Assembly: GCA_002269645.1 (NCBI GenBank)
Contig: NIVC01000283.1
Span: 372,001-436,000, forward strand
Length of the DNA stretch: 64,000 bases
Direction: 5' to 3'
Source: Macrostomum lignano
Lineage: Eukaryota
Position 1 is the first letter of the stretch, and each line of letters starts with the position of its first letter. The position numbers were made by a program, and so were the translations under genes. Under the pieces are notes generated by a model. That model did not search any database and had not been told where the DNA came from. It saw only the letters and a program-made list of their open reading frames with translations. Below, piece by piece: positions 16,861-57,504 of this stretch.

Positions 16861-17019
16861 CCTCTCACCTCTCCCTCTCAACCTTTCCTTCTAACTATTT
16901 ACTCTCCTCTTCTTGTCCTTCACACATTTTACTTATTTTCTACAACTCTGTAGTCTACATAAACAAAACAATAAAAGTTTAATCAAATAAATTTTCTCCA
17001 ACACACAAATTTATACCAG

Positions 17020-17508: not shown

Positions 17509-17539
<31 letters not shown>

Positions 17540-24000: not shown

Positions 24001-25530
24001 CACCATGATAAATGATTTACCACCATGATAGATAAAATGAGGCGCCACCATGATAAATGAGGCGCCACCATGATAGATAAAATGAGGCGCCACCATGATA
24101 AATGATTTGCCGCCATGATAGATAAAAAGAGGCGCCACCATGATAAATGATTCACCACCATGATAGATAAAATGAGGCGCCACCATGATAAATAAGGCGC
24201 CACCATGATAGATAAAATGAGGCGCCACCATGATAAATGAGGCGCCACCATGATAGATAAAGTGAGGCGCCACCATGATATATGATTTGCCGCCATGATA
24301 GATAAAATGAGGCGCCACCATGATAAATGATTCACCACCATGATAGATAAAATGAGGCGCCACCATGATAAATGATTCACCACAATGATAGATAAAATGA
24401 GGCGCCACCATGATAAATGATTCACCACAATGATAGATAAAATGAGGCGCCACCATGATAAATGATTCGCCACCATGATAGATAAAATGAGGCGCCACCA
24501 TGATAAATGATTCACCACAATGATAGATAAAATGAGGCGCCACCATGATAAATGATTCACCACAATGATAGATAAAATGAGGCGCCACCATGATAAATGA
24601 TTTACCACAATGATAGATAAAATGAGGCGCCACCATGATAAATGATTCACCACCATGTTAGATAAAATGAGGCGCCACCATGATAAATGATTCACCACAA
24701 TGATAGATAAAATGAGGCGCCACCATGATAAATGATTCACCACAATGATAGATAAAATGAGGCGCCACCATGATAAATGATTTGCCGCCATGATAGATAA
24801 AAAGAGGCGCCACCATGATAAATGATTCACCACCATGATAGATAAAATGAGGCGCCACCATGATAAATGATTCACCACAATGATAGATAAAATGAGGCGC
24901 CACCATGATAAATGATTCACCTCAATGATAGATAAAATGAGGCGCCACCATGATAAATGATTCGCCACCATGATAGATAAAATGAGGCGCCACCATGATA
25001 AATGATTCGCCACCATGATAGATAAAATGAGGCGCCACCATGATAAATGATTCACCACAATGATAGATAAAATGAGGCGCCACCATGATAAATGATTCAC
25101 TACAATGATAGATAAAATGAGGCGCCACCATGATAAATGATTCGCCACCATGATAGATAAAATGAGGCGCCACCATGATAAATGATTCACCACAATGATA
25201 GATAAAATGAGGCGCCACCATGATAAATGATTTACCACAATGATAGATAAAATGAGGCGCCAACATGATAAATGATTTACCACAATGATAGATAAAATGA
25301 GGCGCCAACATGATAAATGATTCACCACAATGATAGATAAAATGAGGCGCCAACATGATAAATGATTCACCACAATGATAGATAAAATGAGGCGCCAACA
25401 TGATAAATGATTCACCACAATGATAGATAAAATGAGGCGCCAACATGATAAATGAGGCGCCACCATGATAGATAAAATGAGGCGCCACTATGGTAGATAA
25501 AATCAGGCTCCGCCATGATAAAAGTAAGGC
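21005..25530. repeat. 45-bp satellite, about 100 copies (ATGATAGATAAAATGAGGCGCCACCATGATAAATGATTCACCACC)n
   Basis: 4.5-kb array; the unit is a 25+20 dimer of related subunits. Confidence 0.97.
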
Positions 25531-26803: not shown

Positions 26804-27013
26804 TCTAATTTCCCTGTAAACAGCCTTAATTCCCCTGTGAAGAGCCCTAATTCCCCTCAAAGAGCCCTAATTCCCCTATAAAGAACCCTAACTCCCCTGT
26901 CCATCCGGGCAGACGCAACTGGCGAAGAGAAGGTCCGGTCCAAGAGCGTGATCGACCACTCCAGTGGCAAGTCGGCAGCAAGCGGCGGCTCCCGGTTCAG
27001 TCCCTCGCCAATC

Positions 27014-27775
27014 ATGTCGGTCCCTGTCGGCTCCGCCGGCAAGTTAGTCCAAGAAATTCACGACGAATTTCTGGTGTGCAAAATCTGCATGGAGCCGTTC
27101 AAGACGCCGAAATGCTTGGCCTGTTTGCACACTTTCTGCGAGGTGTGCATCGAGAACCACATCGCCTCGGAGGCGGCCTACAAGAAGTACTCGGACTACA
27201 GGGAGTTCACCTGTCCGCTGTGCAGGAAGCGGACTCAACTGCCGCTTGGAGGCGCTAAGAAGCTGCCAGACAATTTCTTAATCTCCAACCTCTCCGACAC
27301 GATGGACAGGCAGAAAGTGTCCGGCACGGCCAACTGCGACATCTGCAAGACCGTGGCCAAGAAGCTCAAGGACGCCGCTAGTAAGTGTCTGGACTGCAAC
27401 AAGCTTCTATGCTCGTCGTGCGTTGAGCAGCACAAGGAGACCAAGGTGACCAGGGACCATTCGATATTTGACGTTGAGACTGAGAAAGACGTCATCTGCA
27501 AGGAGCACGAAGATGAGGTGGTTCGATTCTACTGCGAGCCCTGCCAAGCCTGCATCTGCATCATCTGCACATTCAACGAGCACAAAGACCACGAGGTGTC
27601 CAACTTTAGCGAGGCCGTTGTCAAGTACAAGGCCGATATCGAAGGCATTCTGGTAGATTGCAAAAGTAAAATTGAAGTCTATGAAAAGTACGTCGAGCGA
27701 GTGGCGGGCACTGAGCGGCAGATTACGGAGGCTGAGCAGAAAATTCGCGAGCTCGCCATCGAGTTTATCTCTGAT
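27014..27775 (+). CDS. TRIM (RBCC) E3 ligase, TRIM2/3/56-like, exon 1: RING + B-box1 + B-box2 + start of coiled coil
   Basis: [28 protein letters not shown] (RING), [20 protein letters not shown] (B-box1), [32 protein letters not shown] (B-box2). ATG at 27014. The frame is open back to a CTAAC..CAG acceptor at 26912, so an upstream exon is possible. Donor GAT|GTAGGT at 27776. Confidence 0.92.
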
Positions 27776-27811
27776 GTAGGTCTTTGTTGATCTAAATCTT
27801 TGTTTGGCGCT

Positions 27812-28181
<370 letters not shown>

Positions 28182-28237
28182 TGACCGTGAAAAATCATAT
28201 TTAGCCATAACTTTCGAACTCCCCAATATCTTTGCAG

Positions 28238-28587
28238 ATCCGTCAGCGGGAGAAGCAGCTGATTGACGAGATTCACAACCTGTACGGCAAGCAGACCATG
28301 GAGGTGATCGGCAGGAAGGCCGACCTGCAGTCCGCTCTGTCCACCTTGAAAAGCACCTGCGCTCTGACAGAAATGGTTCTGCAAGGCAAAGATATCGAAC
28401 TGCTTCTGTTAAAGAAGGAAGTACAGGAGAAATTGTCCTCGCTGTCCTCGGCCATGGACCTTGACCTGCCCAAGACCATGAGCAAGGAGATTCGCTTTCT
28501 GCCTGGGCACATCGAGCTGGGCTCCATACAGGACATGGACAAGCCGAATGCCAGTAAATTTCGCAGCTGTATCGTTTCGAATTCCAG
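28238..28587 (+). CDS. TRIM exon 2 (coiled coil)
   Basis: Acceptor tttgcag|ATC (phase 0); [36 protein letters not shown]; donor AG|GTGAGC at 28588 (phase 2). Confidence 0.88.
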
Positions 28588-28644
28588 GTGAGCGGTTGGG
28601 AAAAGTTTAAAAGTCGCTTAATTGGGCTCTGTTAAGACTGTGTG

Positions 28645-29510
28645 CTTCAGAGTGTTCAATTAGGCTTCAGAGTGTTCAATTAGGCTTCAGAGTGCTCAAT
28701 TAAGCATCAGAGTGATCAATTTGGCTTCAGAGTGCTCAATTAGGCTTCAGAGTGCTCAATTAGGCATCAGAGTGCTCAATTAAGCTTCAGAGTGATCAAT
28801 TAGGCATCAGAGTGATCAATTAAGCTTCAGAGTGATCAATTAAGCTTCAGAGTGATCAATTAAGCTTCAGAGTGATTAATTAAGCTTCAGAGTGATCAAT
28901 TAAGCTTCAGAGTGATCAATTAAGCTTCAGAGTGATCAATTAGGCATCAGAGTGATCAATTTGGCTTCAGAGTGCTCAATCAGGCATCAGAGTGCTCAAT
29001 TAAGCTTCAGAGTGATCAATTAAGCTTCAGAGTGATCAATTAAGCTTCAGAGTGATCAATTAGGCATCAGAGTGCTCAATTAAGCTTCAGAGTGCTCAAT
29101 TAAGCTTCAGAGTGATCAATTAAGCTTCAGAGTGATCAATTAAGCTTCAGAGTGATCAATTAGGCATCAGAGTGATCAATTAGGCATCAGAGTGATCAAT
29201 TAGGCATCAGAGTGATCAATTAAGCTTCAGAGTGCTCAATTAGGCATCAGAGTGATCAATTAAGCTTCAGAGTGATCAATTAAGCTTCAGAGTGATCAAT
29301 TAAGCTTCAGAGTGCTCAATTAAGCTTCAGAGTGCTCAATCAGGCATCAGAGTGCTCAATTAAGCTTCAGAGTGATCAATTAAGCTTCAGAGTGATCAAT
29401 TAGGCATCAGAGTGATCAATTAGGCATCAGAGTGATCAATTAGGCATCAGAGTGCTCAATCAGGCATCAGAGTGCTCAATTAAGCTTCAGAGTGCTCATT
29501 AGGCTTCAGA
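28645..29510. repeat. 20-bp minisatellite (AGAGTGATCAATTAAGCTTC)n in TRIM intron 2
   Basis: About 43 copies. Confidence 0.95.
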
Positions 29511-29677
29511 GGGCTCGCTTATTTATCTCAAAGTGATCAGATGTGCTTCAGAGTGGACAGGCGTAACCAGACGCGCTTATGAATGTCTAGAGCGTGTTTT
29601 GGAGTGAGTACAGACGACTCGACGCCCAAAACAAAGTGAGCATTTAACCACAAAACCGCCGCCCCTGCCGCCGCCAG

Positions 29678-30245
29678 CTACTCCTCGCTCACCAGCAGCA
29701 TGGACACTGTTGGCGGCAACGAGGACACTGAAAGCGTCGAAGTTCAAACCGAGCCGGTGGACTTCCTGCGCGAGTCCTGCATGATGGTGGACTTCACGCC
29801 CACTCGCGACGTCGGCCAGTTCGGCTCCGCGATTTCAGCGGTGGCTGCGGCGGCCGCCGCCTCCGCCGCTAGCTCAGCGGAAATGGTCAGCGCCGAGACG
29901 CAGACTGTTGCTAAGGAGCTTCGAGATCAGGAGTCGGCTACGGTGCCAGTGGAACGTGAAGATCGCGGAGTGAACACGTCGAGGATGGCCTCGAGAGCTG
30001 CTCAGCAGCAGCAGCAGCAACAGCAACAACCACAGCAGGCAGTTCCGCAGTCGCCGCAGCAGCAGCAGCAGCAGCCGCAGCAAGTGAACCTCGAAGACGC
30101 AGACCAGCAGCAGCAGCAGCAGCAGCAGAGCGGCTTTTTCAATCGAAGGCGGCACCACAGGCGCATGATGGGGGCGGCCAGCCTCGATGAATTCGGCGGT
30201 GGAGGTGGGGGCGGCGGAGGCTACCCCGGAGTCACGGATCTGTAG
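29678..30245 (+). CDS. TRIM terminal exon (low-complexity, polyA/polyQ/polyG tail; no NHL or SPRY domain)
   Basis: Acceptor ccgccag|29678 is phase-2 compatible; the frame is open to TAG at 30243-30245. Spliced CDS is 1680 nt (559 aa). Confidence 0.72.
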
Positions 30246-34100: not shown

Positions 34101-34929
34101 AATTTCGTCAGATTCGTAGAAGTCAAACGACGGCAACCCAGGGAGTTCTGATGCATAAATTCTAAACTACCTACTTTCAGTAACAAGGCAAAGCACCGAG
34201 TTTTTTAAGTGCAGTTGCTAGGCTGGGAGAGTGACGCGCGATAAGGGCCAAAACTGTGAGCTACATAATTCCTGTGGATGCAGTTTTATTATTCAGAGGC
34301 AAATTATATACAGCGTCCAGGCATCTCGATGAGGAGAAGGAACTGAGATGAGTTTTAATGAGCAGCCGCGCATCGTGCCATGTTTGACATCCCTGCTTGT
34401 CAAGACGGACTCATCAAAGTTAAAGAAAAAAATTGGCATCTAATTGGGCTGCCTGCCTTCAATCTGCTTAAAAGACGATTCTATAGTCTGAGCAGGGGAG
34501 GCGGTGGCAGCGGGGCTCCAAAAATTCCTGACTACACCCCGCGGAGTCTGAAACAATGAAGCTCCCTAGCTGCAATTACTTATTCTGGTAAATAATGAAT
34601 CATCAGCATAGGTTTAAGCGAACCAACCAATGCGACGCGAAAAACAGCATAGACTTGTTGCATAGATTCTCGCATTGCATTTACGTACATACTTGTCGCT
34701 GTAATATACAGTGTATCGCACCCGGTAACCATAGCAACGCTAGTGTATAGGTAAAACCAAGATGATGAAACAAAGGTGGAGAGAAGGGGAGAAGAGGCAA
34801 GGTGGAGAGAAGGGGGAGGAAGCGCTAGCGCATTTAATTGGGACAATACCAAGACTCAAAACGCTTATATGTAGATTCCAAGAGCCATCGAACACCGTTA
34901 AGACAGGTGGGTGTTCAATACGCCTCGTA

Positions 34930-35652
34930 ATGCTGCAACAGGCTCTTCTGCTGCTGAGCACTCTGCATGCTCTAGTGCTGGCTTGCCCGGCTCCATTTAG
35001 CGTCGAGGCGGGCAGGTGCATCTTCGCTAACAATACGCAAGCTCACAGCTGGTGCTCTGCCAACAGGCAGTGTGCAGCCATCGGAGGCGAGCTGATCAAC
35101 TCCTACAACTCGCTGAAGCTGCTGAACAGCATGCCCGGTCTGAGCTGCACCGGATGCTACTTCTGGCTTGGAGTGACTGACATGGCTGACGAGAGAGACT
35201 CAAGCAGGTCGGGCTGGCAGCTGATCAACGGCAACGGCATCCTGCCACTGAACGAGTCGATGTGGCAAGGAACCGAGCCTAACGGACCGGCCTCTGAAAA
35301 CTGCGTACTGCTCAAAGACGGAGGCCTTCTCGCTAATTACCTGTGCTCTGCTCGGTTAGGCTGTGCCTGCGAATGGGCTCCGGGTGCAGCACCTCCGACA
35401 TCGGCTGCGACCTCCTGGCAGAAGACGCCGTTCAAGCGAACCAGCTACAATCCCAGCTCCGAGTACTGCTACAAAGACCTGATGCAGGTGGACAATGAAA
35501 TCAAATGCATCACTGAAGCCATGAGTTCGGGCAGCTGCAGACACGTGCTGTACAACAGCAAACTGAAGCTGTGCCGCCTGCTGCAGTTCACCGACACCCC
35601 AGTTGAGGAGTCGATTGAGACCAGCGACGACTGGGTGAAGTTCAGCAACTAA
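34930..35652 (+). CDS. Secreted C-type lectin/PAN-like protein, paralog 2 (240 aa, intronless)
   Basis: ATG at 34930 (MLQQALLLL signal peptide) aligns with paralog 1; same domain motifs. Confidence 0.88.
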   Translation: MLQQALLLLSTLHALVLACPAPFSVEAGRCIFANNTQAHSWCSANRQCAAIGGELINSYNSLKLLNSMPGLSCTGCYFWLGVTDMADERDSSRSGWQLINGNGILPLNESMWQGTEPNGPASENCVLLKDGGLLANYLCSARLGCACEWAPGAAPPTSAATSWQKTPFKRTSYNPSSEYCYKDLMQVDNEIKCITEAMSSGSCRHVLYNSKLKLCRLLQFTDTPVEESIETSDDWVKFSN

Positions 35653-36544
35653 GTGCCGGAAAGGGGCAATGAGCAGGACCCAAGGCACGTTGTTAAACTC
35701 CAATAGGCATCTTCAGGTTGATTTTTACTCCTGTTTCACCTGAAGAAATACCTGATTGTGTAACCAGTTAAACAGGCCGGAAAAACAAACCGATAGCAGA
35801 AATGTTGCTTTAAACCAAGCATAGCAGCCTCGCCCCCTGAGCCAAAATGCACAGCAAGGCATTCAAATGGTGTTTTGTGTTAATTTATTTTCAGATAAAA
35901 ATTTCAAAGTCAATACAGCAAATTACTTCAGAATAGCAGTACACAGGCTTTTTGGGTTGTAGTTTCATTATAATAACTAAGATGGTTGTTGAGTTTATTG
36001 CATGAGCCGAAGAAATTGCACACAGTTTCATAATTAAGAGATTATTACTGCATTTACGCATGTAGAAAGAAATTTTCAGATGCGCTTTTCAAAGAAAAAT
36101 AATTCCGACTTGTTCACGAGTAGTATCTATAGATCTATAGCTAACGCATCCGCCAGGGTTGAAGAGTTAAGATGCCAGTACAATTTAGGAATAATAACAG
36201 TTGAAGCATTTAAAAGTACACCCGACACACGAACAACAATGCAGACAGGAAGGACTATAAATAATATAAATTAATTAACAATATTTACACTTAGAAACTT
36301 ATTAGATTGAGAATATGAAAGCAGCCACAATACGAGTAGTACAAAGATGGCTTTGTAGTAATATTTATTACTTTGAGGAACTTCCAGGAACGCAGTTAAA
36401 TATAAAATGCAGGCCTTTCCTAAACAACTTTTGAATTTACTAATAGTAGTAAAAATAGGACACGAAAATTGAAATCGTGGATACCTTCTTACCGATGGCT
36501 TGTGACTCAAGGACCGTGATGTGGACTTAGGGAAGAAGAAGAAC

Positions 36545-37378
36545 CGTGGGTCAGTAGCAGACCACCAAAGGACCATGGGTCAGTGGTAGGTCACCAGAGA
36601 ACCGTAGGTCAGTGGTAGGTCACCAAAGAACCGTGGGCCAGTGGTAGGTCACCAAAGAATCGTGGGTCAGTGGTAGGTCACTAAAGAACCGTGGGTCAGT
36701 GGGAGGTCACTTAAGAACCGTGGGTCAGCGGGGTGTCACCAAAGGACCATGGGTCAGTGGTAGGTCACCAAAGAACCGTAGGTCAGTGGTAGGTCACCAA
36801 AGAACCGTAGGTCAGTGGTAGGTCACCAAAGAACCGTAGGTCAGTGGTAGGTCACCAAAGAACCGTGGGTCAGTGGTAGGTCACCAAAGAATCGTGGGTC
36901 AGTGGTAGGTCACTAAAGAACCGTGGGTCAGTGGGAGGTCACTTAAGAACCGTGGGTCAGCGGGGTGTCACCAAAGAACCATGGGTCAGTGGTAGGTCAC
37001 CAAAGAACCGTAGGCCAGTGGTAGGTCACCAAAGAACCGTGGGTCAGTGGTAGGTCACCAAAGAACCGTGGGTCAGTGGTAGGTCACTAAAGAATCGTGG
37101 GCCAGTGGTAGGTCACCAAAGAATCGTGGGTCAGTGGTAGGTCACCAAAGAACCGTGGGTCAGTGGTAGGTCACCAAAGGACCGTGGGTCAGTGGTAGGT
37201 CACCAAAGAACCGTGGGTCCGTGGTAGGTCACCAAAAACCGTCGGTCAGTGGTAGGTCACTAAAGAACCGTAGGTCAGTGGTAGGTCACTAAAGAACCGT
37301 AGGTCAGTGGTAGGTCACTAAAGAACCGTAGGTCAGTGGTAGGTCACTAAAGAACCGTGGGTCAGTGGGGGGTCACCA
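36545..37378. repeat. 29-bp minisatellite (GTGGGTCAGTGGTAGGTCACCAAAGAACC)n
   Basis: Visible. Confidence 0.94.
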
Positions 37379-37469
37379 AAATGAACATGAAGTACAACAA
37401 ATGTCACAAACTTTTCGCATCTTCCTTTAACTACAGTTGGTCAGAGAAGTTTCACTACAGTATCAGCTG

Positions 37470-37694
37470 TCACTGTGCCGGTAGTACGCCGTACGGCTTG
37501 GAGTTAAAATGCAATCTCAACTGCGCGTGCAACTGCTCAGGCTGCAGAGCTGATAGTCGCCGCTGAAACTTGGTAGTCAACAGTTTACTGGGCGGCGCGG
37601 CCGTGACAGGCAGCACAAGCAGATGTTGCAGAAATCGCCACAGATGAGGAATAGTGGTGCTCTTGTGCTCCCAGAATGTGCGCCAGGAGCAGAC
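37470..37694 (-). CDS. HHCC-hAT chimeric gene, exon 6 (terminal): hAT C-terminal dimerisation-like domain; missed by the ORF track
   Basis: Acceptor ctcatacag|37694 (phase 0); VCSWRTFWEHKSTTIPHLWRFLQHLLVLPVTAAPPSKLLTTKFQRRLSALQPEQLHAQLRLHFNSKPYGVLPAQ then TGA at 37472-37470. Confidence 0.8.
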   Translation of the reverse strand, partial: VCSWRTFWEHKSTTIPHLWRFLQHLLVLPVTAAPPSKLLTTKFQRRLSALQPEQLHAQLRLHFNSKPYGVLPAQ

Positions 37695-37755
37695 CTGTAT
37701 GAGTTGTACACGGTATAGATAGCTTTTTTAACCTAAAATAATAACACTGTTGAAA

Positions 37756-37885
37756 TTCAGGGCGATTCTTTAGGGTATTTCAGGGCGATTCTTTAGGGTA
37801 TTTCAGGGTGATTCTTTAGAGTATTTCAGGGCGATTCTTTAAGGTATTTCAGGGCGATTCTTTAGGGTATTTCAGGACGATTCTT
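37756..37885. repeat. 23-bp repeat (CAGGGCGATTCTTTAGGGTATTT)n in intron 5
   Basis: About 5.5 copies. Confidence 0.9.
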
Positions 37886-38122
37886 TAGGGTATTTCAGGG
37901 CTATTCATGGACTTCTGGGTGATTATTCAGGGATTTCTGAGCCAGCAAATAAATGCTAAAAGAGCCAAGGTCAGGCAAACTGCAAAATTAGTTCAAAGGC
38001 GATTCACAAAGAGACACATGGCAGGGGAATGGATGTTATGTTTCACACTGAGATCATGCTGATATGCACTAAGACAAGCTTGATTAAAACACTAAAGCAC
38101 CAACACTATAAGCATTACAAAC

Positions 38123-38992
38123 CTGCTCTCTATAGGTAATCAAAGCTCTATTGAGCTGCTCCTTCACTTTGGCATAGATCTCGGCAACAGGCCGCTTGAC
38201 CAGCACAGTCATGCACTGGTCATCAATTAGCACCTGTCGAGTCTCGCAGAATGCCAGATGATTCTGCTGGCACAGGTATTCAATAAGCTCGTCAACCTCA
38301 GCCTGATCGTAGTGCCTCTCGCCGCTGTCCTTGAATTTCGGATGCAGCACAGCGCACAGGCTGAGCAGTGTTCTCAATCGCCGATTCTTTAAATAGATAT
38401 CGCGCAGCGACACTAGCAGAGTATCCGTTAGCAACCGGAACAGAGGCTGCTCAGAGTACGGACTCGAGGCAAGCAGATTTTCCAGATCTTTCAACAGAGA
38501 GATGGTGGAGGCCAGAGGTAGAAAGTCATGCGAGCTGCCCAGCTGGGTGAGTTCCTGAGTATAGGAGGTCACTAGCTGCAGGTAGTGATGCACAATCACC
38601 AGCTCTTGAGTGTTCAGAGCTCCGTGGACGTTCATCTGGCCCATGTAGACAGACAGTCGGCAGAACTGCTGGGTCAGGCCGGGCTGAAATGCTTTTTCAG
38701 GCTCCGGCACCCCGCTGAGCAGGAACTGCTGCACCTTCTCGCCAACAAACGGGGCGTATTCTCTCAGAGATCGGTTTACTGAGAAGCTCAAGGCGGACAC
38801 GAAACACGGCACCACTAGGATATTGTCCTGCTGATACTCCACGTAGGACATCGCTTGAAGTTCTTCCTCTGTCAGGCTGAGCGTCATGGGCATGCCCATG
38901 GCCGACTCCAGGCCCGGGATGAGGCGAATGAAGCTGACGATGTCAGTCTCGGCTATGAGCGGGTAGGAGCCCACGTATAGTACACCGTCAAT
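38123..38992 (-). CDS. HHCC-hAT chimeric gene, exon 5: hAT transposase-derived core
   Basis: Acceptor ccgctccag|ATT at 38992; donor CAG|GTTTGT at 38122; both phase 0. Motifs VPCFVSALSFSVNRSL and CAVLHPKFK. Confidence 0.85.
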
Positions 38993-39164
38993 CTGGAGCG
39001 GAGTAGCGGGTGGTTCATTTAGAGTGGCTGTAGAACCACGGCTTGTGATAGGTCACTAAAGTATCATGGGACACAGGGGGTCACCAATGTACTATAGGGT
39101 AATATGTGCAGGAGGTCAACAATGTAACATGGGCGTCACAGGTCAAAAAAATTACCATAGGAAA

Positions 39165-39685
39165 CAAAGGTCACCATGGGGGACAAACGAGGTCACTAAA
39201 AAATTAGGGGAGCCAAAGGAGGTTACCAAAGTACCATAGGGAACAAAGTAGGTCACTAAATTACTATATGGGATAAATGAAGTCACTAAATTACCATAGG
39301 GGACAAATGAGCTCACTAAAGTATCATACGGGACAAATGAGGTCACTAAATTACCATAGGGGACAAATGAGGTCACTAAAGTACCATAGGGGACAAATGA
39401 GGTCACCAAAGTACCATAGGGGACAAATGAGCTCACTAAAGTACCATAGGGGACAAATGAGGTCACTAAAGTACCATAGGGGACAAATGAGCTCACTAAA
39501 GTACCATAGGGGACAAATGAGCTCACTAAAGTACCATAGGGGACAAATGAGGTCACTAAATTACCATAGGGGACAAATGAGGTCACTAAAGTACCATAGG
39601 GGACAAATGAGCTCACTAAAGTACCATAGGGGACAAATGAGCTCATTCAAGTACCATAGGGGACAAAGGAGGTCACCAAAGTAGC
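39165..39685. repeat. 30-bp minisatellite (GGGGACAAATGAGGTCACTAAAGTACCATA)n in intron 4
   Basis: Visible. Confidence 0.93.
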
Positions 39686-39715
39686 ATGGGCAGTGGCAGG
39701 TCAGCAAAGGCCCAC

Positions 39716-40134
39716 CTTAGGATTGTAGCCAAACACGCTAACGGCAATCTGGCCGCCAGACACAGTCCAGTGGGTGGCGGACACGGCAGTAGGATTAGAA
39801 GTTTTCAAAACGTCCTCTTCCAGGTTCAGCACCAATTCGTGCTGGGGACCGCACAGCTGCTGCAACACGTCGGTGGGGTACAGGTGAGTGACGGACAGAT
39901 TTCTCAGAGTCTCCATGCTCAAGGCAGGAGTATCGACGGCGGCCGCCAAAGCGGCAGAATCAGCTGCTGCCGCCGATGCACCCGAAGAGGAAGTTCGGAC
40001 ACCGGTGGGGAGCGGGAGGCAGGTCAGCGTCGGCTTGGTCGGGGTGCCCGCGGAGCCGGAGGTGACCGATGCCAGGACTGAGGCGCCGCCGAGAACGGGA
40101 AAGTCGGATAGGCCGGCCTGGCTGATGGGGTCGG
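39716..40134 (-). CDS. HHCC-hAT chimeric gene, exon 4: low-complexity linker + start of RNase H-like fold
   Basis: Acceptor ctacgcag|40134 (phase 1); donor AAG|GTGGGC at 39715; ends ..AVSATHWTVSGGQIAVSVFGYNPK. Confidence 0.82.
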
Positions 40135-40162
40135 CTGCGTAGGGGGGTGAAGGGGCTATTAA

Positions 40163-40320
40163 ACGAATTTCTAGGAATTTTAAGACGATTTTCTAGGAAT
40201 TGATGGGCGATTTCTAAGAATCGATAGGCGATTTCTAGGAATTGATAGGCCATTTTCTAGGAATTGATAACTGATTTTTTAGGAGTTTTTAAACGAATTT
40301 CTAGGAATTTTTAGGCGATA
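40163..40320. repeat. Degenerate ~21-bp repeat (GATTTCTAGGAATTGATAGGC-like) in intron 3
   Basis: About 7 diverged copies. Confidence 0.7.
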
Positions 40321-40379
40321 GTATTAGAATAAATTCGATTTTGACTAAACACATGAGAACAATATGAAACGCAACTCAC

Positions 40380-40567
40380 AGCCGATGCAAGCATCCTCAG
40401 AGATGCTAGTTAGGTAGGCCTGTTCTCTTTGCTCGATAGCTTTCAGAGCGCTCTGTCTGTGCTTATTGTATAGGCCTTCCTCTTTCAGACTGTTAGTGAA
40501 GATGCGATAAGACTGCAGGCGCTTGGCACATACTGGGCACAGCTTCAGGAACAGCTCGATCACCGAC
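40380..40567 (-). CDS. HHCC-hAT chimeric gene, exon 3: CxxC half of the HHCC motif
   Basis: Acceptor ttgtcag|40567 (phase 2); SVIELFLKLCPVCAKR..; donor T|GTGAGT at 40379. Confidence 0.85.
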
Positions 40568-40635
40568 CTGACAACAGTTGTTGGGAGGTCCTGCGGCTGT
40601 CAATGCTCGAATGGCTCGCTGCCCCCCTCTCGTCC

Positions 40636-41999
40636 CAGATCCCTCACTGATTTCCCCAACCTGCAGATCCCTCACTGATTTCCCCATACTGCAGATCCCT
40701 CACTGATTTCCCCAACCTGCAGATCCCTCACTGATTTCCCCAACCTGCAGATCCCTCACTGATTTCCCCAACCTGCAGATCCCTCACTGATTTCCCCATA
40801 CTGCAGATCCCTCACTGAGTCTCCCCATACTGCAGATCCCTCACTGAGTCTCCCCAACCTGCAGATCCCTCACTGATTTCCCCATCCTGCAGATCCCTCA
40901 CTGAGTCTCCCCATACTGCAGATCCCTCACTGAGTCTCCCCATACTGCAGATCCCTCACTGAGTCTCCACATACTGCAGATCCCTCACTGAGTCTCCCCA
41001 ACCTGCAGATCCCTCACTGATTTCCCTATCCTGCAGATCCCTCACTGATTTCCCCATACTGCAGATCCCTCACTGAGTCTCCCCATACTGCAGATCCCTC
41101 ACTGAGTCTCCCCAACCTGCAGATCCCTCACTGATTTCCCCATCCTGCAGATCCCTCACTGAGTCTCCCCAACCTGCAGATCCCTCACTGATTTCCCCAT
41201 CCTGCAGATCCCTCACTGATTTCCCCATACTGCAGATCCCTCACTGAGTCTCCCCATACTGCAGATCCTTCACTGAGTCTCCCCAACCTGCAGATCCCTC
41301 ACTGATTTCCCCATCCTGCAGATCCCTCACTGAGTCTCCCCAACCTGCAGATCCCTCACTGATTTCCCCATCCTGCAGATCCCTCACTGAGTCTCCCCAT
41401 ACTGCAGATCCCTCACTGAGTCTCCCCATACTGCAGATCCCTCACTGATTTCCCCATCCTGCAGATCCCTCACTGAGTCTCCCCATACTGCAGATCCCTC
41501 ACTGAGTCTCCACATACTGCAGATCCCTCACTGAGTCTCCCCATACTGCAGATCCCTCACTGAGTCTCCACATACTGCAGATCCCTCACTGATTTCCCCA
41601 TACTGCAGATCCCTCACTGAGTCTCCCCATACTGCAGATCCTTCACTGAGTCTCCCCAACCTGCAGATCCCTCACTGATTTCCCCATCCTGCAGATCCCT
41701 CACTGAGTCTCCCCAACCTGCAGATCCCTCACTGATTTCCCCATCCTGCAGATCCCTCACTGAGTCTCCCCATACTGCAGATCCCTCACTGAGTCTCCCC
41801 ATACTGCAGATCCCTCACTGATTTCCCCATCCTGCAGATCCCTCACTGAGTCTCCCCATACTGCAGATCCCTCACTGAGTCTCCACATACTGCAGATCCC
41901 TCACTGAGTCTCCCCATACTGCAGATCCCTCACTGAGTCTCCACATACTGCAGATCCCTCACTGAGTTTCCCCATACTGCAGATCCCTCACTGAGTCTC
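40636..41999. repeat. 29-bp minisatellite (CTGCAGATCCCTCACTGAGTCTCCCCATA)n in intron 2
   Basis: About 47 copies. Confidence 0.96.
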
Positions 42000-42026
42000 C
42001 GCTGCCCCTCCCACCCAAGCACAAAC

Positions 42027-42223
42027 CTGGGGATCTTGTGATACTGCTCGCCCAGAGAAGTCTGCGTCTTCTTAATGCCGCAATGAATGCCGTCCTGAAT
42101 GTGGTAGGCGCTCAGAATATCGTAGAAGCGCTCAACAGTGGCCACGCGTTTGAATACGTTGCTGTCGCCTTCTTTGCGAGAGCACACCAGGATCTCTCGC
42201 ATGCCGCCGCCTGCGCTGGGCAC
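42027..42223 (-). CDS. HHCC-hAT chimeric gene, exon 2: HxxxxxH half of the integrase-type zinc-binding domain
   Basis: Acceptor ctaatccccataaaccag|42223; KRVATVERFYDILSAYHIQDGIHCGIKKTQTSLGEQYHKIPR; donor AG|GTTTGT at 42026. Confidence 0.85.
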
Positions 42224-42314
42224 CTGGTTTATGGGGATTAGTGTAGATTAGGAGAAGCAAATGTTGGAAACTAAACTGAAGAGGACTCATAGGGTGGATT
42301 ATTAAGTGGCGTCT

Positions 42315-43598
42315 AGTTCTTACGGTGGATTAAAGGGCGATTCTCATAGAGTGGATTAAAGGGCGATTCTCAAAGAGTGGATTAAAGGCCGATTCTCATA
42401 GAGTGGATTAAAGGGCGATTCTTATAGAGTGGATTAAAGGGAGATTCTCAGAGAGAATGGATTAAAGGGCAATTATCATAGAGTGGATTAAAGGGCAATT
42501 ATCATAGAGTGGATTCAAGGGAGATTCTCATAGAGTGGATTCAAGGGAGATTCTCAGAGAGTGGATTCAAGGGAGATTCTCAGAGAGAGTGGATTAAAGG
42601 GCGATTCTCATAGAGTGGATTTAAGGGCGATTCTCATAGAGTGGATTAAAGGGCGATTCTCATAGAGTGGATTAAAGGCCGATTCTCATAGAGTGGATTA
42701 AAGGGCGATTCTCATAGAGTGGATTAAAGGGCGATTCTCATAGAGTGGATTAAAGGGCGATTCTCAAAGAGTGGATTAAAGGCCGATTCTCATAGAGTGG
42801 ATTAAAGGGCGATTCTTATAGAGTGTATTAAAGGGAGATTCTTATAGAGTGTATTAAAGGGCGATTCTCATAGAGTGGATTAAAGGGCGATTCTCATAGA
42901 GTGGATTAAAGGGCGATTCTCATAGAGTGGATTAAAGGGCGATTCTCATAGAGTGGATTAAAGGGCGATTCTCATAGAGTGGATTAAAGGGCGATTCTCA
43001 TAGAGTGGATTCAAGGGAGATTCTCAGAGAGAGTGGATTAAAGAGCGATTCTCATAGAGTGGATTAAAGGGAGATTCTCATAGAGTGGATTAAAGGGTGA
43101 TTATCATAGAGTGGATTAAAGGGCGATTCTAATAGAGTGGATTCAAGGGCGATTCTCATAGAGTGGATTAAAGGGCGATTCTCAGAGTGGATTAAAGGGT
43201 GATTCTTAGAGAGAGTGGAGTAAAGGGCGATTCTCAAAGAGTGGATTAAAGGCCGATTCTCATAGAGTGGATTAAAGGGCGATTCTTATAGAGTGTATTA
43301 AAGGGAGATTCTTATAGAGTGTATTAAAGGGCGATTCTCATAGAGTGGATTAAAGGGCGATTCTCATAGAGTGGATTAAAGGGAGATTCTCATAGAGTGG
43401 ATTAAATGGCAATTATCATAGAGTGGATTAAAGAGCGATTCTCATAGAGTGGATTAAAGGGCGATTCTCATAGAGTGGATTAAAGGGCGATTCTAATAGA
43501 GTGGATTCAAGGGCGAATCTCATAGTGGATTAAAGCGCGATTCTCAGAGTGGATTAAAGGGTGATTCTTAGAGAGAGTGGATTAAATGGCGATTCTCA
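42315..43598. repeat. 26-bp minisatellite (GATTCTCATAGAGTGGATTAAAGGGC)n in intron 1
   Basis: About 49 copies. Confidence 0.96.
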
Positions 43599-43685
43599 TT
43601 TTAATAAGACGTCTAAATTTAGGGATTAAAGATTTGATTATGAAAGACGAACAAAAACTATAAAAGAAAATTTACAGTCACTAAC

Positions 43686-44360
43686 CTGTAAAATTCTGAA
43701 CTGCTTTTTCCTCACAAACAGCCTAAAGGCGGAGTCCTGCTCAGTTCTTGGATCTTTCAGGAAGCTGATAATCCTATCGGCAAATTCCTGGCGAATTTCG
43801 CCGCCAATCGATCGGCTGGTGGGCGGGTAGTGATTGATCAGGTGGGTGTTGAACTCCTCGCGATCTGGCAGCAGCGGCGTGTTGGCAGGCGGCGGGTCCA
43901 AGTCTTCGCCACTCAACAGGGCGCTTGGAACCGTGATGACGTCTTCATCAACTATTGGCGGAGAAGCCAGCATCTGCTGCTGCTGATGATGATGCTGATG
44001 ATGCATCAGGTGGCTGCCGCCGCCAAAGCCAGTCAGGTAGACTGAGTGCGGCTGTACACCTGTAGGCACTTTAGCGATTGGACCAGAACCGGAGCCGCTA
44101 GCGCTGGAAATGCTGACTGAAACTGTTGGTCGGACAACAATGTGCTGCTGCTGCTGATGCTGCTGGTGGTGGTGCTGGTCCAGCTGGTGAGACAGATCAT
44201 GCGAAGTTGAAACTTCGATAGAGTTTAAAACGGCTGGGGGCTCATCGTTAGGGCCGCCAACAACTGATCCGCTGGCGCTGCCGAGGCTGCCACCGCGGGA
44301 CAACGGGAGCTGCAGGTATTGCATCTCCGACATGGCGACGGCTTCGAAGGAGCGCTTCAT
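43686..44360 (-). CDS. HHCC-hAT chimeric gene, exon 1: His/Gln/Ser-rich N-terminus + start of NOL4-like domain
   Basis: ATG at 44360 with an in-frame TAA 8 codons upstream; ends ..FADRIISFLKDPRTEQDSAFRLFVRKKQFRILQ; donor CAG|GTTAGT at 43685. Confidence 0.82.
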
Positions 44361-44753
44361 TCTTGCTAGACTTTCACAAACTTAAAAACACAAAGATAAA
44401 CCAATTCAAATCGAGAGTTAAATTGTGAACAATTAAAGCAGGAATTGGTAAATTTTCATGTTATTACCCATACGCAAAATAACTGCAACATGATTGTAGG
44501 CACACTGATACACAACTTTCAGCAATATTTTCCTGTCAACAACTGAAAAAACCAGCGAAGTGTCCCTATTGTAGCTAAGGCTTAAATCATACTAGACTGT
44601 TATTTAAGTCTGCCCAAATTCAATTCAAAAGTGCCCCTATTGGATAAGAATCACCAAAACCCGCGGACACCGCACAGGGGTTACTTCAGAGGGGCGCGCC
44701 TGTGCAGCCCTATCAAAATAAGTGGCTTGGACACCTCCTGTGCAAAAGACTGA

Positions 44754-44802: not shown

Positions 44803-47530
44803 CACTACCTTTATATTTTTGGGTAGGCATTTTTGCAACTTATCCACAGTCCACCACAATTTATGGTGGCCAGATTAGCTAGGTTGGCCAGTGCTCAGTT
44901 GCACATGTATGATTTCTAGAAATCATTAACATAGTTTAACAAATTTTGTTGCAGGTAATAATTGCACTATATTTACGTTTGTAAATAATGATAAATTTTG
45001 GTAGCTAAGTATTTATTGCATGAGATAAAAGTAATTAATAAACAATAGAAAACTATTTGGCCAAGAATGTTGAATGTTAGGCCTTTGAATTACACTTTTC
45101 TAGTTTTCTACATTTGCCTATTCATTTTGTAAGTGAAGCATAGGCCATGAACTCATGCATGCCTACATACCTACATATGAGTATAATGTACATGCAGACA
45201 TACCTATAAGTGCACCCACCACCTGCCCTTTCTTAGGCGCAATGGACAGGCATATGCAAAATAAAGACTTGTTCCAATAGGGAAAAGTGCAGTAAAAAAG
45301 CTAGCCCTCTTTTTGTAGATACTTGAGCTTTGGCAAACTGCGTGCATCAAACAACTTTCCACAAAAGTGCTTAGCTACAATAAGGCTAAATAGCTAATTC
45401 TGCCTATTTTGCTTACTTTTAAGCAAATAAAAATATATCAATGTTAAGGAATTTTATATAATATATATCTAAATAAATCTGTCTATAAGGCTGTCCTTCA
45501 GCTATGAATCAGAAAAATTCTTTATGTTTCAAAACTTGTTATAATATATTATAATGTATTATAATGTGAAAAAGCTATTATTAGACAATAGTCTATAGCC
45601 AAAATGTTTATTTTTTACTTAAATTAGTGCATATACTAATAATGAGTAAGTATGAATTTAGACTTATTATTCCATATCATTCTAAGGCTGTAGATGCTTA
45701 GATGACCATCACTATAAATAAAAAGTATAACTTGGGATTGTTCTGCTCACTGTATAAAAAAGCATTATATGCTAATGGACTAATACTTTAATCAGATGCC
45801 TATAGCTATGTTGGCTGAATATTTTATCTATTACTAGTAGATAGTAGTGATTTATCACTTTTCTAATCTATAGTTTTGTGTTATTAAAAATATTATAACT
45901 ATACTTTAGGCTGTTTTGGCTAGGCCTATAGACTATGCTATTGACATTTTAAGATCAAGATCAAATATATTTTATAATAAGTTTTAAAATAAAAAATATT
46001 GCTGAATCAGACTTGTCTTTTAAAAGTAGTTATTACTTAAACATCTCATAAATTAATTTTATATCTAAAGCCAAAATAAATTAATAAACAAAGACAAAGT
46101 AAAAAACTTGACAATTGCAAAATTTTTAAGTCTAACTCTAACATTGATATACATAATTGGTATATAAAAATGGCCAACCAATGTAAGGTTTGGTATTAAA
46201 CTGTATAACAAAATTTGAATCAAAGAAGAATCTTAAAATAATAACAACTAAAATGGAATTAGCATAAAACCTGCTAAGAAAATGAAAGTAAAACAAACAA
46301 AGAAATAAAATTAAATGCTTGCTATATCTAGACTATTGATAGGTACCAGCCACTGTATTATTTGTTCTAGAATATGCATATCCAATGCTCATGGAATATA
46401 TATATATATATGAATATAATATATCTTAAAAGTTCTTTTAAATGTAATTAAATGTATATTAAAAGTTTTGTGATTTTTATATAAAAAATAATAAGATTTA
46501 AATAATGCTTTATAGAAAAATAAACGAAGGTAAAGCTATAGTCAAGGTCCTAGGATAGGATACTAATTTAATACATAGGACTAGCTTAGTATGTATAGCT
46601 AGTTTAGCTTAGCTTAGTTAAATAGACCTTACTTTAACAGATTATGGGTATGGCCTAGTCTCCATTAAAGAGGTTAATAGAATAAAACATCAAAACGGAC
46701 ATAACATAATATGTCTGACTTATTTAACACCAATTATAAAAAGATCTAATTGCAACTTGCAAGTTAGCCTACTTAATTAACTTAATAAGAAAAGAAAAAC
46801 TTAGAGGCCTATTAAGCCTAGGCCTGCTATACTATTTTAGTAATTAAATAATCCAAGTATAAGTCAGGACATATTCTTGTAAATTACGTATGGATTCAAT
46901 TTAAACAGCAAATAATTAGTGAATACAATAAACTAGGCGGGCCCGGGGGGCGACTTTGCACTTTGAAATCTGTTACTTTCGCAGAAAATGGAAATTCTGG
47001 AATTATAGCCCTTGAGTGGATCAAAGCAGAAATGAATTTGGTCAGACATTTTTATTTGACAAAAAACAAACTTTTAGCTGTTCCGCTATATTTATATCTG
47101 TGGTTTTGTTTATTATTAACTTTTATTTATTATATAGCGAAATTCCTAATCTTAATTAATTACTAATTCAACAACTTTTGAACGTGTGTTTTAATACGTA
47201 CTTTCCGGAGCTTTTAGTAAATCGTCCTGTATCTGCATGAAAAATGATTCCTACTACTACTAAAAACCAGGGATAGCATTGCAGAGCAGTTATTATTTTG
47301 TATTATAACCGAGTAATACTGGTAGGCAAACCGGCAAACGGAAAAGTTATTGGGAAAATTTAATTTTTTTGGCTAGTCTACACCTTAGGCCCATAATAAA
47401 GGCAATTGTTATTGTTACGGTGACGTGACCGTATAAATAACAAAACGGTTAAGATCAGCACATCAGCAGTTCGAGACCTGCAGCAGCATCGGCTGCCGCA
47501 GCAGCAGCGGTCAACGACCTTGGTCAGCAG

Positions 47531-48580
47531 ATGCCGCGGCGAAGTGCGAGAAGCGAAGTGTCCGAAGACCCGCCAGACGAGCTTCTGCCAGGTTTGGACG
47601 ACCTCGGCCAGAACATCAGGCCCCAGGATGTGAGAACGATGATGGCATCTCTGCAGCAGCAGATGGAGCGGCCGGTAAGAAAGTCTGTTAAGATTGTAAA
47701 GTACACGCCCAGCCAGGACATCCATGTCTGGCTCGCCGCGTTCGAGCAACGCTGCGAGATGGAGCGCATCGAAGATCCGATCGAGATGAAGCAGCACCTC
47801 GTTGCGAGTCTAGACCTGGCGACTGCTTAGCCGGCTCTGCTCAGTATGCACCTCCCACGCTATGCTGGCTACGAGGAGGTCAAGCAGCGATTGATCGAGA
47901 GATTCGCCCGCCACGGTGGCGCTGATGAATATCGAGAGCTGCTGAGGCGCCGTCAGAAAGGCAAGAATGAGTCAGCGGAAGAGTACGCTGACGCCCTGCG
48001 CACCTTGGGAGAGCGAGCGTACCCTCGAATGCACCCTGAGGATCGAGAGCGGGAGCTGGCTGATCAGTTCCTAGCTGGCATCAGGACGACACCAGATCTG
48101 CGCGAGCGGCTCTATTGGGTCCGCCCGAACAATCTGCTGGCCGCTATTCGAGAACTACATCGTCTGGAAGGCGCTAAAGAACTGGCGCAGCGCTCTGCTC
48201 AACCCCCGGTTCGCATGCTGAACGGGGAGCGCGACGGTGACCCGACGCCCGACGCCACCGCTCAAGCTCTCCTGGCTCTGACTGATCTGCTAGAGAAACA
48301 GCAGCGACTGCTAGACAACCTGGTGCAGCGTGACCAGCAGCAGAAGACGAGTCCGCCTGCGAAAGCCATGATCTGCTATGGCTGCGGTCAGCCTGGTCAT
48401 CGCAATGCACAGTGCCCGCTACGCCAGAACCAGGGAAACGGCGAGACGGAGAGCGCCCCCGGCAACGCCCTCCGCAGAGCCCAAGCCCCGGCTACTTGGC
48501 AGACTCCGAACGCTCACCAGAAGAAGAGGATGTCGGCTGCGCAGGCGCCAATGCCCAGTCCGACAGTCGCTCATCAGTAA
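47531..48580 (+). pseudogene. Gypsy gag (one in-frame TAG at 47828-47830), with CCHC knuckle
   Basis: ORFs 47531-47830 and 47846-48580 share a frame; CYGCGQPGHRNAQC. Confidence 0.88.
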
Positions 48581-49875
48581 GTGAGGCTGAGTGCGGAGGT
48601 TTCGTGGACACCTCCGATGATCAAAAAATCCATGCGCGTGAGGCCGATCCGTACGTCACCGGCCGATTGGCGGGCCGAGAGGTTCCCCTCTTGCTAGACA
48701 GCGGCAGCCGGAAAAACTTTCTTGGAGCGTCGACCTGGGCCAATGTTAGACGTCGGATGCCTCGTTGTATCATATCGCATGCTATCCCAGATTGCGTGAC
48801 CATGTACGACGGTACGCAGCTACCCCTTGCGTGTAAGGTGATCATCCCGGTGGAGTTCGGTGATGTCGTCGCGGACACCGAATTCCTGGTCACGGTCACC
48901 GATTGTGAAAATTTGCTTGGTATTGATTTCATGCGTGAACACTGCCAAAACTTGGACTTTGCTCAAGGAATATTAAAGTTCAACAATGGCGCGTGCATTC
49001 CCGTTCGATATTCGCGCCGTGAGCTTCAATCATGCCGGGTGTACACCTCCGAGAAGTGCACTCTGCCGCCCAGAAGCTCAGCGCTGTTGGCCGTCCAGTT
49101 GGATGTCGGCCACCCCGAGAACCGAGGATCGCCATCAATCGTCGAGCTGGTGAAGTCGAGACTGCACCCCAGCTGCAACACTCTGGAAGCAGCTCCAGCT
49201 CTGATGACGATGCCTGAAGGTCGAGGCTACATCGAGGTCGTCAACACTGCTGACTGCGAGGTGTTCCTGCAGTCGGGCATCCGCGTTGGTGTTGCGACAC
49301 CACTTAGAACTGCCGACCTGATGTACCTGGAAGAGACGCCGGAACCTGAAGTACGACATTTGCCAAGGAGCCCTGAAGAGTCCAGCACAGCTTGGCTAGA
49401 GGAAGTCGAGATCAACAGCGAACTGTCCGAAGATCAACGACAGAGAGTGCGAGATCTACTAGTTGAGTGTCAAGCAGCCTTCTCGAAGCACCTGCTAGAC
49501 GCTGGCCTGACACACCTGGTGACCCACGAGATCATCCTGAAGGATCGGACACCAGTTGCGCTACCACCGCGCAGGATCCCGCCTCATCTGAAGGACAAGT
49601 TAGACGCCCTGCTAGACGAGATGCTGGCGAAGCACATCATTCGCCCAGCTTATTCTAGTTACAACTCGCCAATGCTGATAGTGCCCAAGGAGGACGGCAA
49701 GATCAGGCTGGTGCATGACTTCAGAGCTCTCAACGACAAGTGCGTGTACCACCCGTACCCGCTGCCGCACATTCAGGAGACCTTCGCGAAGCTGCGTGGT
49801 GCCTAGTGGTACTCTAGCTTGGATCTCGCTCAAGGATTCTGGCAGATCCCGCTGCGCGACTGCGATCAGCACCTC
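48433..49875 (+). pseudogene. Gypsy pol (aspartic protease + N-terminal RT), -1 frame to gag, TAG at 49804, truncated at about 49875
   Basis: LLDSGS protease; SPMLIVPKEDGKIRLVHDFRALN..YPLPHI..A*WYSSLDLAQGFWQIPL. YxDD, RNase H and integrase are absent. Confidence 0.9.
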
Positions 49876-56190: not shown

Positions 56191-57504
56191 GGTAATCTTT
56201 CGTTACCCGACCGTAAATTATTTTCTAAGTTTTTTCGAATTTTTTATATTTAAAATGTAAATATTTTTACAGGCTTACGGTAAAAGCTAAAAGTCAGCAT
56301 GGGTAAAAGTCAGCATGGGTAAAAGTCAGCATGGGTAGTAGTGCTAGACCCAGTAAATGAAATTTTCAAAATGATGCTCTCCTCCCCAATGGCGCCTCCA
56401 GATAAACTCCTGGAGGTAAGTGTCAAAGAGTGCGCCCGACATGCCACGCATCCGTCTTAGCTTGGCCTTGACATGACCCCACGTTCCCTCGATGTTCTGG
56501 GTGTGCACAGTTGGGTCCGCAGGGTTGACGAAGTTGAGGGAGTGGTTGACAGTGGCATGGTTTGGCAGCTGGTTGTACACAGCCCACTGGTCAGTCAGGA
56601 TGCATGAGCCGGGTAGCACATGCTGTTGAATTAGAGGCAGTAGAACAGCAGCTAACCGGGACTCAACTGTCATCATGACAAAGTTTCTTGAGTCACGCTC
56701 AATCATGCCGAGTACCCAGTGACCCTCTCGGTACTGGCCAACATGGTACTTGTGGTGCATGAATTTCGACTCATCAATTTCCACAGTACGTCCGGGACCA
56801 CCCAGCTGCTGGAGATGGTCGATTGCCCACTGGCAACAGACATTGGGGAAATAGTTGAACCAGTCAACTATTGTCTTAGTTGAACCTATGCCAACCTCTC
56901 GCATGACAACGTCGTACTTGACATCAAGTGTCTACCAGTACATTAGCTGGATGATCTTGTCCAGTGGCAGGTGACTATTGTAGAAGAAGGAGTCTTGTTG
57001 CAATGACTTGTACCCCTTGCACTCTTTGCAGTACCAAGCATGGCCATCCATTGTATTGCGTGCGCGATTGACAAAGCCCATAGGCGTGTGGCAGCACTGC
57101 ATGGTGTTACGGAGCAGGCCAAGGGTTGCCAGCCAGTTTATTGTATCGTCCATTGTGTCCGTCTTCCTGTGGACATCTTGCAGCTTCAGGGCCAGGGCTT
57201 GCAGCAGCTGGTCAGCCGGAATGACCGAATTCTGGGGTACAATGGTTGTTGGGGCTCGAGGTCAATCAGCCATTGCTAAAAGGATGCGGAAAACACGTTA
57301 AAGACATGAGAAATAATTTTTGAGATATTGAGATATTTAAGATATTTGAGATTATTAAAAAATTAAAAAATCCAAAATTAAAAACATTTTTTTCTTTTCT
57401 TAAAATGTGCGCCCCACATATATACACAACTTCAGCCAAAAAAATTAAAAGAAACTGAAACAGGAAGCTGAAAATAATTTACGGTCAGGTAAGGAAAGAT
57501 TACC
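56191..57504 (-). mobile_element. Merlin DNA transposon B (different subfamily)
   Basis: 34-bp TIRs GGTAATCTTTC.. (2 mismatches); 8-bp TSD GAGTCTAT/AAGTCTAT. Transposase from ATG 57273 with VEIDES, LTDQW, NIEGTW, EFIWR; three in-frame stops. Confidence 0.93.

Follow-up and report, generated by a model that had tools for sequence, protein, structure and literature searches.

The nearest described counterpart of the gene reported here is SCAND3/ZBED9 of therian mammals, a host gene that holds a SCAN domain, a complete integrase of the GINGER2 clade and a full-length Buster-type hAT transposase (PMC3575427). Ginger2 transposases themselves carry an H2C2 finger and a DDE (aspartate-aspartate-glutamate) core without the extra motifs of Ginger1 (Bao et al., PMC2836005), and the HHCC (two-histidine, two-cysteine) domain of integrases binds zinc and favours multimerisation (PMC2615046). 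We analysed a 64,000-nucleotide stretch of the genome of the flatworm Macrostomum lignano (contig NIVC01000283.1, positions 372,001 to 436,000 of the forward strand; below, the window) and followed up a six-exon gene on its minus strand, which an earlier sequence-only reading had described as an integrase-type zinc domain fused to a hAT transposase body. On balance, we take it to be a constrained host gene in which a captured integrase module is linked to a lineage-restricted body that probably ends in a hAT-type dimerisation region.

Like SCAND3/ZBED9, the flatworm gene has an integrase-derived part that includes the HHCC residues and a C-terminal part that is putatively hAT-derived, dimerisation module included; both genes have introns, are single- or low-copy and are constrained (PMC3575427). 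Unlike SCAND3/ZBED9, the flatworm protein lacks both a SCAN domain and an integrase core (no match to the Pfam family rve), and its hAT signal extends over about 44 residues only. None of our sequence or structure searches returned SCAND3, and since that gene is restricted to therian mammals (PMC3575427) the likeness would be convergent and not orthologous. It had also been stated that no gene of this architecture was described; as a published host gene made of integrase plus hAT, SCAND3/ZBED9 overturns that statement (PMC3575427).

The comparison extends to other groups of genes. Ginger2-type or cellular-type integrases, among them KRBA2 and two sponge proteins discussed below (P0003 and P0019), share with the flatworm gene an N-terminal extension domain and an HHCC finger of identical spacing; in them the finger is followed by an rve DDE core, whereas none is detectable in the flatworm gene, a candidate relative of the Ginger2 clade. 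Host-transposase fusion genes (Cosby et al., bioRxiv 10.1101/2020.05.07.082677) likewise have a non-catalytic N-terminal transposase or integrase domain spliced to other coding exons and are probable DNA-binding regulators. The described cases are from vertebrates and their partner is mostly recognisable (KRAB, SCAN), while the flatworm partner is an orphan body, possibly transposon-derived. Domesticated hAT genes (the ZBED family, DAYSLEEPER, Kat1) resemble the flatworm gene to the extent that a hAT C-terminal dimerisation region may be present here in an immobile, intron-containing host gene; they have clear hAT domains and usually a BED finger, but neither a BED finger nor a hAT catalytic region is detectable in the flatworm gene. 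In a wider sense the flatworm gene is one of the known genes that arose when DNA-binding domains of transposases were captured (bioRxiv 10.1101/2020.05.07.082677). Vertebrates are recognised to have gained new regulators from genes built in this way, but few such genes have been documented in flatworms or other spiralians.

Gene structure, second copy and constraint

Joined together, the six exons give 2574 nt, an uninterrupted frame of 857 codons and a stop. Each of the five introns starts with GT and ends with AG, and the phases derived from the exon lengths are 0, 2, 1, 0 and 0, so that the model proposed from the letters alone joins exactly. The product of 857 amino acids (aa) is letter for letter that of GenBank PAA86353.1 (P0015; BOX15_Mlig012647g1, Mlig012647.g1, a hypothetical protein of Macrostomum lignano), and the GenBank gene span of 6891 nt is the one that had been proposed. 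Around the gene, the reverse complement of 27470-54360 of the window agrees in every letter with the GenBank contig. The six-exon gene is real and intact; its GenBank annotation exists, and the protein is uncharacterised. Directly upstream of the exon 1 ATG lies an in-frame stop, the stop-to-stop open reading frame (ORF) being 43641-44381. The gene and its parts are as follows.

37470..44360, minus strand: whole gene from start to stop codon, six exons, 857 aa, equal to PAA86353.1 / BOX15_Mlig012647g1
43686..44360, minus strand: exon 1, aa 1-225, with a Q/H/S/G-rich low-complexity region (aa 1-165) and then the beginning of the integrase-type N-terminal module
42027..42223, minus strand: exon 2, aa 226-291, holding HHCC residues H266 and H272
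40380..40567, minus strand: exon 3, aa 291-354, holding C301 and C304, with a basic helical stretch after them
39716..40134, minus strand: exon 4, aa 354-493, with the S/A/T/G-rich linker (about aa 346-440) and the beginning of the C-terminal body
38123..38992, minus strand: exon 5, aa 494-783, core of the C-terminal body, with predicted short strands and then long helices; no sequence relatives found
37470..37694, minus strand: exon 6, aa 784-857 and the stop codon
40516..43859, minus strand: integrase-derived module, aa 168-308, exons 1-3 including introns 1-2, made up of an N-terminal extension domain and the HHCC zinc finger with no catalytic core after it (by homology to P0019 and P0003 and an Integrase_H2C2 match)
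37545..37676, minus strand: hAT-dimerisation-like segment, aa 790-833, corresponding to positions 23-65 of the 84-position PF05699 (sub-threshold Pfam match, 20.4 bits against a cut-off of 21.4)

Since the Mlig_3_7 gene models were made from RNA sequencing (RNA-seq) with StringTie, TACO, TBONE and TransDecoder (PMC5730564), the junctions have indirect transcript support. In an older UniProt model, A0A1I8J0J3 (P0001), intron 2 is bounded by a different donor of exon 2 and a different acceptor of exon 3 (40567-40600, 42027-42140), and both zinc-motif histidines are lost. We prefer the exon 2 donor of the six-exon model because homology to the sponge protein P0003 supports that junction. We discarded the names under which UniProt lists older models of the gene (ankyrin repeat, Rho-GAP, spastic paraplegia 11), as they find no domain support in Pfam.

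A second genomic copy is present on contig NIVC01000105.1 (locus L002), collinear with the window from 52756 to 31100, over more than 21 kb. The collinear block takes in the upstream and downstream neighbours as well as the intronic minisatellites, and identity is 93.6-98.7% across the aligned blocks. The second copy fits the large-scale duplication known in the M. lignano assembly, where 180 Mb lie in duplicated blocks of at least 95% identity (PMC5730564). One indel between the duplicates was seen upstream of the gene: about 1.8 kb present in the second copy (L002 5477-7280) is absent from the window copy (about 47453-47460).

In the second copy all six exons have equal lengths, the splice sites are retained and the 857-codon frame is open. 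Of the 857 codons, 30 differ between the two coding sequences, 26 of them synonymously and 4 non-synonymously, and the ratio of non-synonymous to synonymous substitution rates (dN/dS) between the two copies is 0.05-0.08 by three methods. So few non-synonymous differences have a binomial P of 2e-12, against an expectation of 75% non-synonymous. No amino-acid change falls in the integrase-derived module and one falls in the C-terminal body; for the body alone, dN is 0.0011 and dS is 0.044 between the copies.

In agreement with the earlier statement that no terminal inverted repeats (TIRs) are evident, the only complementary pairs that span the gene are weak, AT-rich and 21-22 nt long, at 76-77% complementarity, and none is convincing. 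Within the 64-kb window, tblastn finds the six exons and no further fragment of the gene, and a full-length word-indexed search returned just two M. lignano protein clusters of this family. On copy number and mobility, which had been left to be checked, the outcome is two collinear loci without TIRs and two protein clusters in the species. The introns, the lack of TIRs, the position of the second copy in a collinear block of more than 21 kb and a dN/dS of about 0.05 together speak against a mobile copy: the locus is a nuclear host gene of low copy number under purifying selection, and no mobile element.

The same evidence bears on the idea that the gene encodes the transposase of an undescribed DNA transposon that is still mobile and would pair an HHCC finger with a hAT-like enzyme. 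The frame is intact, purifying selection is possible for transposase genes too, and relatives of the N-terminal module are multi-copy, with flanking inverted clusters of a palindromic repeat in a sponge. Against this, however, there are no TIRs, the five introns are filled with minisatellites and no DDE core is detected; moreover, only two loci were recovered, collinear over more than 21 kb with the neighbouring genes included, and the species has only two protein clusters. We consider a mobile element extremely unlikely.

The integrase-derived N-terminal module

The motif H-x5-H-x28-C-x2-C, which had been read from the translation, is found at H266, H272, C301 and C304, and its ligand spacing is that of the rve-bearing sponge protein P0003. 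A Pfam search of the whole protein gave two matches only, both sub-threshold, to Integrase_H2C2 (aa 260-307) and to Dimer_Tnp_hAT (aa 790-831). Both families had been named in advance as ones to look for, as had an RNase H-like domain, for which no match was obtained. The best Integrase_H2C2 (PF17921) score is 19.7 bits (E 9e-4), below the gathering cut-off of 25.5; the sponge relative likewise stays under the PF17921 cut-off, at 22.1 bits. No Pfam match to zf-BED, or to any family besides H2C2, was found in the N-terminal half.

In an exhaustive HMMER search of 1.84 billion representative proteins, the relatives outside Macrostomum cover about aa 168-253 only, and the best of them are two cluster-mates of the sponge Ephydatia muelleri, P0003 and P0019. 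BLASTP against P0019 aligns aa 183-308, about 125 residues, at 44% identity (E 1e-27); all four ligands lie inside this alignment, which ends at the CxxC. P0003 runs on past the module into a Pfam rve integrase core (E 6.6e-11). An unrelated environmental eukaryotic contig (L003) shows the same arrangement, with the same N-terminal module and then an rve ORF. When the N-terminal alignment was used as a profile, the matches were 37 short ORF fragments without names, and no named protein was among them. Vertebrate NOL4, considered as a protein that might have a module of this kind, came up in none of the searches and was discarded. Intron positions differ between the flatworm gene and the L003 relative and are not informative.

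The sponge integrase gene is multi-copy, and on both sides it has inverted clusters of a 16-bp palindromic repeat, about 3.8 kb apart (L004 7855-7956 and 11616-11807, Ephydatia muelleri), which look like the subterminal repeats of a cut-and-paste element.

What follows the finger is different in the flatworm. The protein gives no Pfam match to the rve core at E up to 10, and beyond aa 308 there is no similarity to P0019 or to locus L003. An integrase origin of the HHCC motif is supported by the alignment to P0019 and by the rve core of P0003, as the sequence-only reading had held. The homology shows that the module (aa about 168-308) was captured from a Ginger-like, cellular-type integrase, with the extension domain and the HHCC finger retained and the DDE (rve) core absent.

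We also weighed a simpler history, in which the whole protein descends from a single Ginger-like ancestor and the C-terminal body is a degenerate integrase core followed by the element's own C-terminal region. Relatives of the N-terminal module always proceed into an rve core, and in the low-confidence structural models described below a strand-rich stretch is followed by helices, an order compatible with any RNase H-like fold. But no rve signal appears at E up to 10, similarity to P0019 and L003 ends at aa 308, the low-complexity linker between HHCC and body is about 130 residues long where that of P0003 is about 20, and the only family signal in the body is hAT. A single ancestor thus seems very unlikely, and we retain capture of the module without its core.

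The C-terminal body and its possible hAT origin

After the module, aa 346-440 form a low-complexity linker rich in S, A, T and G, and aa about 441-857 look globular. It had been claimed that the C-terminal ~440 aa follow the hAT motif order through to the end. We could not confirm this as stated: what is seen is a sub-threshold Pfam match at aa 790-833. In a sub-segment scan against 24,736 Pfam models, Dimer_Tnp_hAT matches these residues with 20.4 bits and E 4.6e-4, one bit under the curated cut-off of 21.4, and the match is in register with a full domain that would end near the stop codon. As a control, the same 98 residues were reversed and shuffled nine times; the best E obtained was 0.12, with no hAT match, so that the observed E is about 250 times better than the best of these ten controls.

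The C-terminal regions of hAT proteins mediate dimerisation, as the Pfam family is defined. A hAT-type C-terminal end to the flatworm protein is plausible, with about as much to be said for it as against it. In that case a dimerisation region of hAT type would probably occupy the last 85 or so residues, and the gene would be chimeric, with two transposon superfamilies behind it. The chimera first proposed thus stands in its integrase half, while its hAT body depends on one near-threshold match at the C-terminal end.

Further searches with the body were negative. The C-terminal 424 aa, in a word-indexed protein search at E up to 10, recovered their own M. lignano cluster (P0001) only, and a metagenome scan with exon 5 gave no relatives. 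Four queries were compared by sequence with the Protein Data Bank (PDB), namely the whole protein, its last 509 aa, its last 158 aa and the N-terminal profile; they gave chance matches only, and no hAT transposase such as Hermes. The sole integrase entry seen in the PDB searches was a non-significant fold match, at rank 50 with E 4.4. In the low-confidence structural models a few strands are followed by long helices that take up about 215 residues, with terminal helices after these, an order compatible with hAT and not diagnostic of it. A hAT layout or RNase H-like fold may fit such models, yet they are no evidence for it.

These results bear on a different view of the C-terminal half, namely that the integrase module is fused to an orphan or fast-evolving, lineage-specific host domain that has nothing to do with hAT, and that the Pfam match is a chance likeness of an amphipathic helical tail. 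The match does lie below the gathering cut-off; no match to the remaining hAT-associated families, such as the BED finger or the hAT RNase H-like regions, appears at E up to 10; the exhaustive search returned no hAT protein, and the PDB sequence and fold searches no Hermes-like structure; and the same C-terminal region has chance 15-bit matches to antibody light chains. However, none of the ten shuffled or reversed controls came within about 250-fold of the E of 4.6e-4. The match is also located where hAT proteins carry the domain: it lies at the C-terminal end, and its register agrees with the length of the model. Moreover, the equally sub-threshold H2C2 match in the same protein turned out to be real. 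We regard an unrelated orphan domain as rather doubtful, though the most serious of the alternatives, and keep to a body that probably ends in a hAT-type dimerisation region.

A more specific form of the favoured reading has two superfamilies brought together independently in a flatworm-restricted regulator, a Ginger-like integrase module without its core and a diverged hAT body that keeps its dimerisation end. We put this forward tentatively, as falling somewhat short of an even chance.

Several points speak against the favoured reading as a whole. The hAT match is under Pfam's curated cut-off and covers about 44 residues only, and aa 430-790 match no hAT-related or other Pfam family, no PDB chain and none of the 1.84 billion representative proteins. 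AlphaFold2, run without an informative alignment, gave a predicted local distance difference test (pLDDT) score of 34 for the 857-aa protein and 36 for the 509-aa C-terminal model, and Foldseek against the PDB with both of these low-confidence models found no match better than E 0.4. Constraint was measured only between two recent copies, with a dS of about 0.04. Neither the protein collections nor the metagenome scan contained an orthologue from another species, other Macrostomum genomes not being among those searched; of the claim that this is a domesticated host gene, host-gene status and a dN/dS of about 0.05 between copies hold up, while long-term conservation across species gained no support. 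The function of the protein as a DNA or chromatin adaptor or regulator is wholly inferred. Finally, the RNA-seq-derived annotation of the second copy (PAA90686.1, P0016; L002 13568 onward) runs through the exon 3 donor and reaches its end after 11 codons of intron 3, giving a product of 364 aa that holds the N-terminal module only.

The last of these points raises the question of whether exons 1-3 and 4-6 mainly make separate products, a 364-aa module-only protein and a C-terminal one, with the 857-aa fusion a minor form or an artefact. The same read-through of the exon 3 donor is possible in the window copy (40380-40400). Furthermore, a partial model from the older assembly (P0017) begins inside intron 3 and covers exons 4-6 only. 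That model has no start methionine, however, and looks like a truncated prediction. Three models join both halves: the RNA-seq-derived PAA86353.1 of the window copy connects all six exons, and the older P0001 and P0002 join the two parts independently. In addition, the exons agree in phase, and in neither copy is a splice site lost or the frame interrupted across the junction. Separate products are therefore an unlikely account of the gene, although a short isoform of 364 aa may coexist with the full-length product.

As to mechanism, the captured integrase N-terminal module lacks the DDE core and is probably tied, through a low-complexity linker, to a body of about 420 aa that is restricted to the lineage. 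Because no DDE core is detectable, the protein is most likely non-catalytic. The long Q/H- and S/A-rich regions would be disordered and of a kind typical of regulators. We infer that the zinc-stabilised integrase module contacts nucleic acid or chromatin and self-associates, that the C-terminal helical region would serve for dimerisation, and that the protein may act as a nuclear, DNA- or chromatin-bound adaptor or regulator. Strong constraint on the integrase extension and HHCC finger without a core suggests that they have a useful activity of their own, in nucleic-acid or chromatin binding or in multimerisation.

If two superfamilies were indeed brought together in a flatworm-restricted regulator, SCAND3/ZBED9 would have a counterpart that arose by convergence in an invertebrate, and an integrase N-terminal domain would be seen to work alone in a cellular protein. 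Should the C-terminal half be hAT-derived, the gene would join SCAND3/ZBED9, a gene of still unknown function, as the second integrase-plus-hAT chimera and one of independent origin, in an experimentally tractable, regenerating flatworm; should that half not be hAT-derived, the case would be one of ordinary domain capture by a lineage-specific gene.

Minisatellites and neighbouring genes

Most of the window is minisatellite DNA. Tandem arrays occur in all five introns of the gene, long in introns 1, 2 and 4 (about 0.5-1.4 kb) and short in introns 3 and 5. The intron arrays differ from one another, with units of 22-30 bp and up to about 49 copies, and are found in the second copy too, at different lengths. 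The arrays in and next to the gene are listed here, with no strand assigned.

42325..43599: intron 1 minisatellite, 26-bp unit, about 49 copies, also in the second copy
40636..42000: intron 2 minisatellite, 29-bp unit, about 48 copies
40164-40318: intron 3 minisatellite
39173..39687: intron 4 minisatellite, 30-bp unit, about 17 copies
37756-37906: intron 5 minisatellite
36539-37380: minisatellite in the 3' flank

Two long reading frames were rejected as genes. The 164-aa ORF at 39152-39646 is a translation of the intron 4 tandem array, and the 1490-aa ORF at 20994-25466, which has no family match, is due to a 4.5-kb array (20994-25520; 45-bp unit, about 98 copies) that is open in one frame.

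The sequence-only reading had described the neighbouring transposable elements as full of stops. A few transposase fragments do exist, far off; the surroundings, however, are mostly minisatellites and host genes, and no hAT or integrase sequences were found near the gene in the window. Within the block duplicated together with the six-exon gene there is a RING and B-box (TRIM-like) gene on the plus strand (26882-30245), with a GenBank product of 606 aa. Farther away, a GC-rich stretch (56%) on the plus strand, at 47831-49803, is 98.7% conserved in the second copy and has a zinc-knuckle (CCHC) ORF that overlaps a 490-aa ORF without a family match; a gag-like remnant is one possible reading of it, an unannotated gene another. 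A C-type lectin domain ORF (34744-35649, plus strand, E 5e-6) lies where the GenBank segment listing of the contig has no gene. Two adjacent plus-strand ORFs at 16983-18091 match the rhodopsin family of seven-transmembrane proteins (E 2e-29 and 4e-15) and are probably one G protein-coupled receptor gene with an intron or a frame change. Also farther away, an IS1595/Merlin-type DDE transposase fragment is present at 56347-56931 on the minus strand. Finally, a mariner-like transposase remnant on the minus strand (62878-63999), with helix-turn-helix and DDE regions in separate ORF pieces and at least one interruption, reaches the end of the window.

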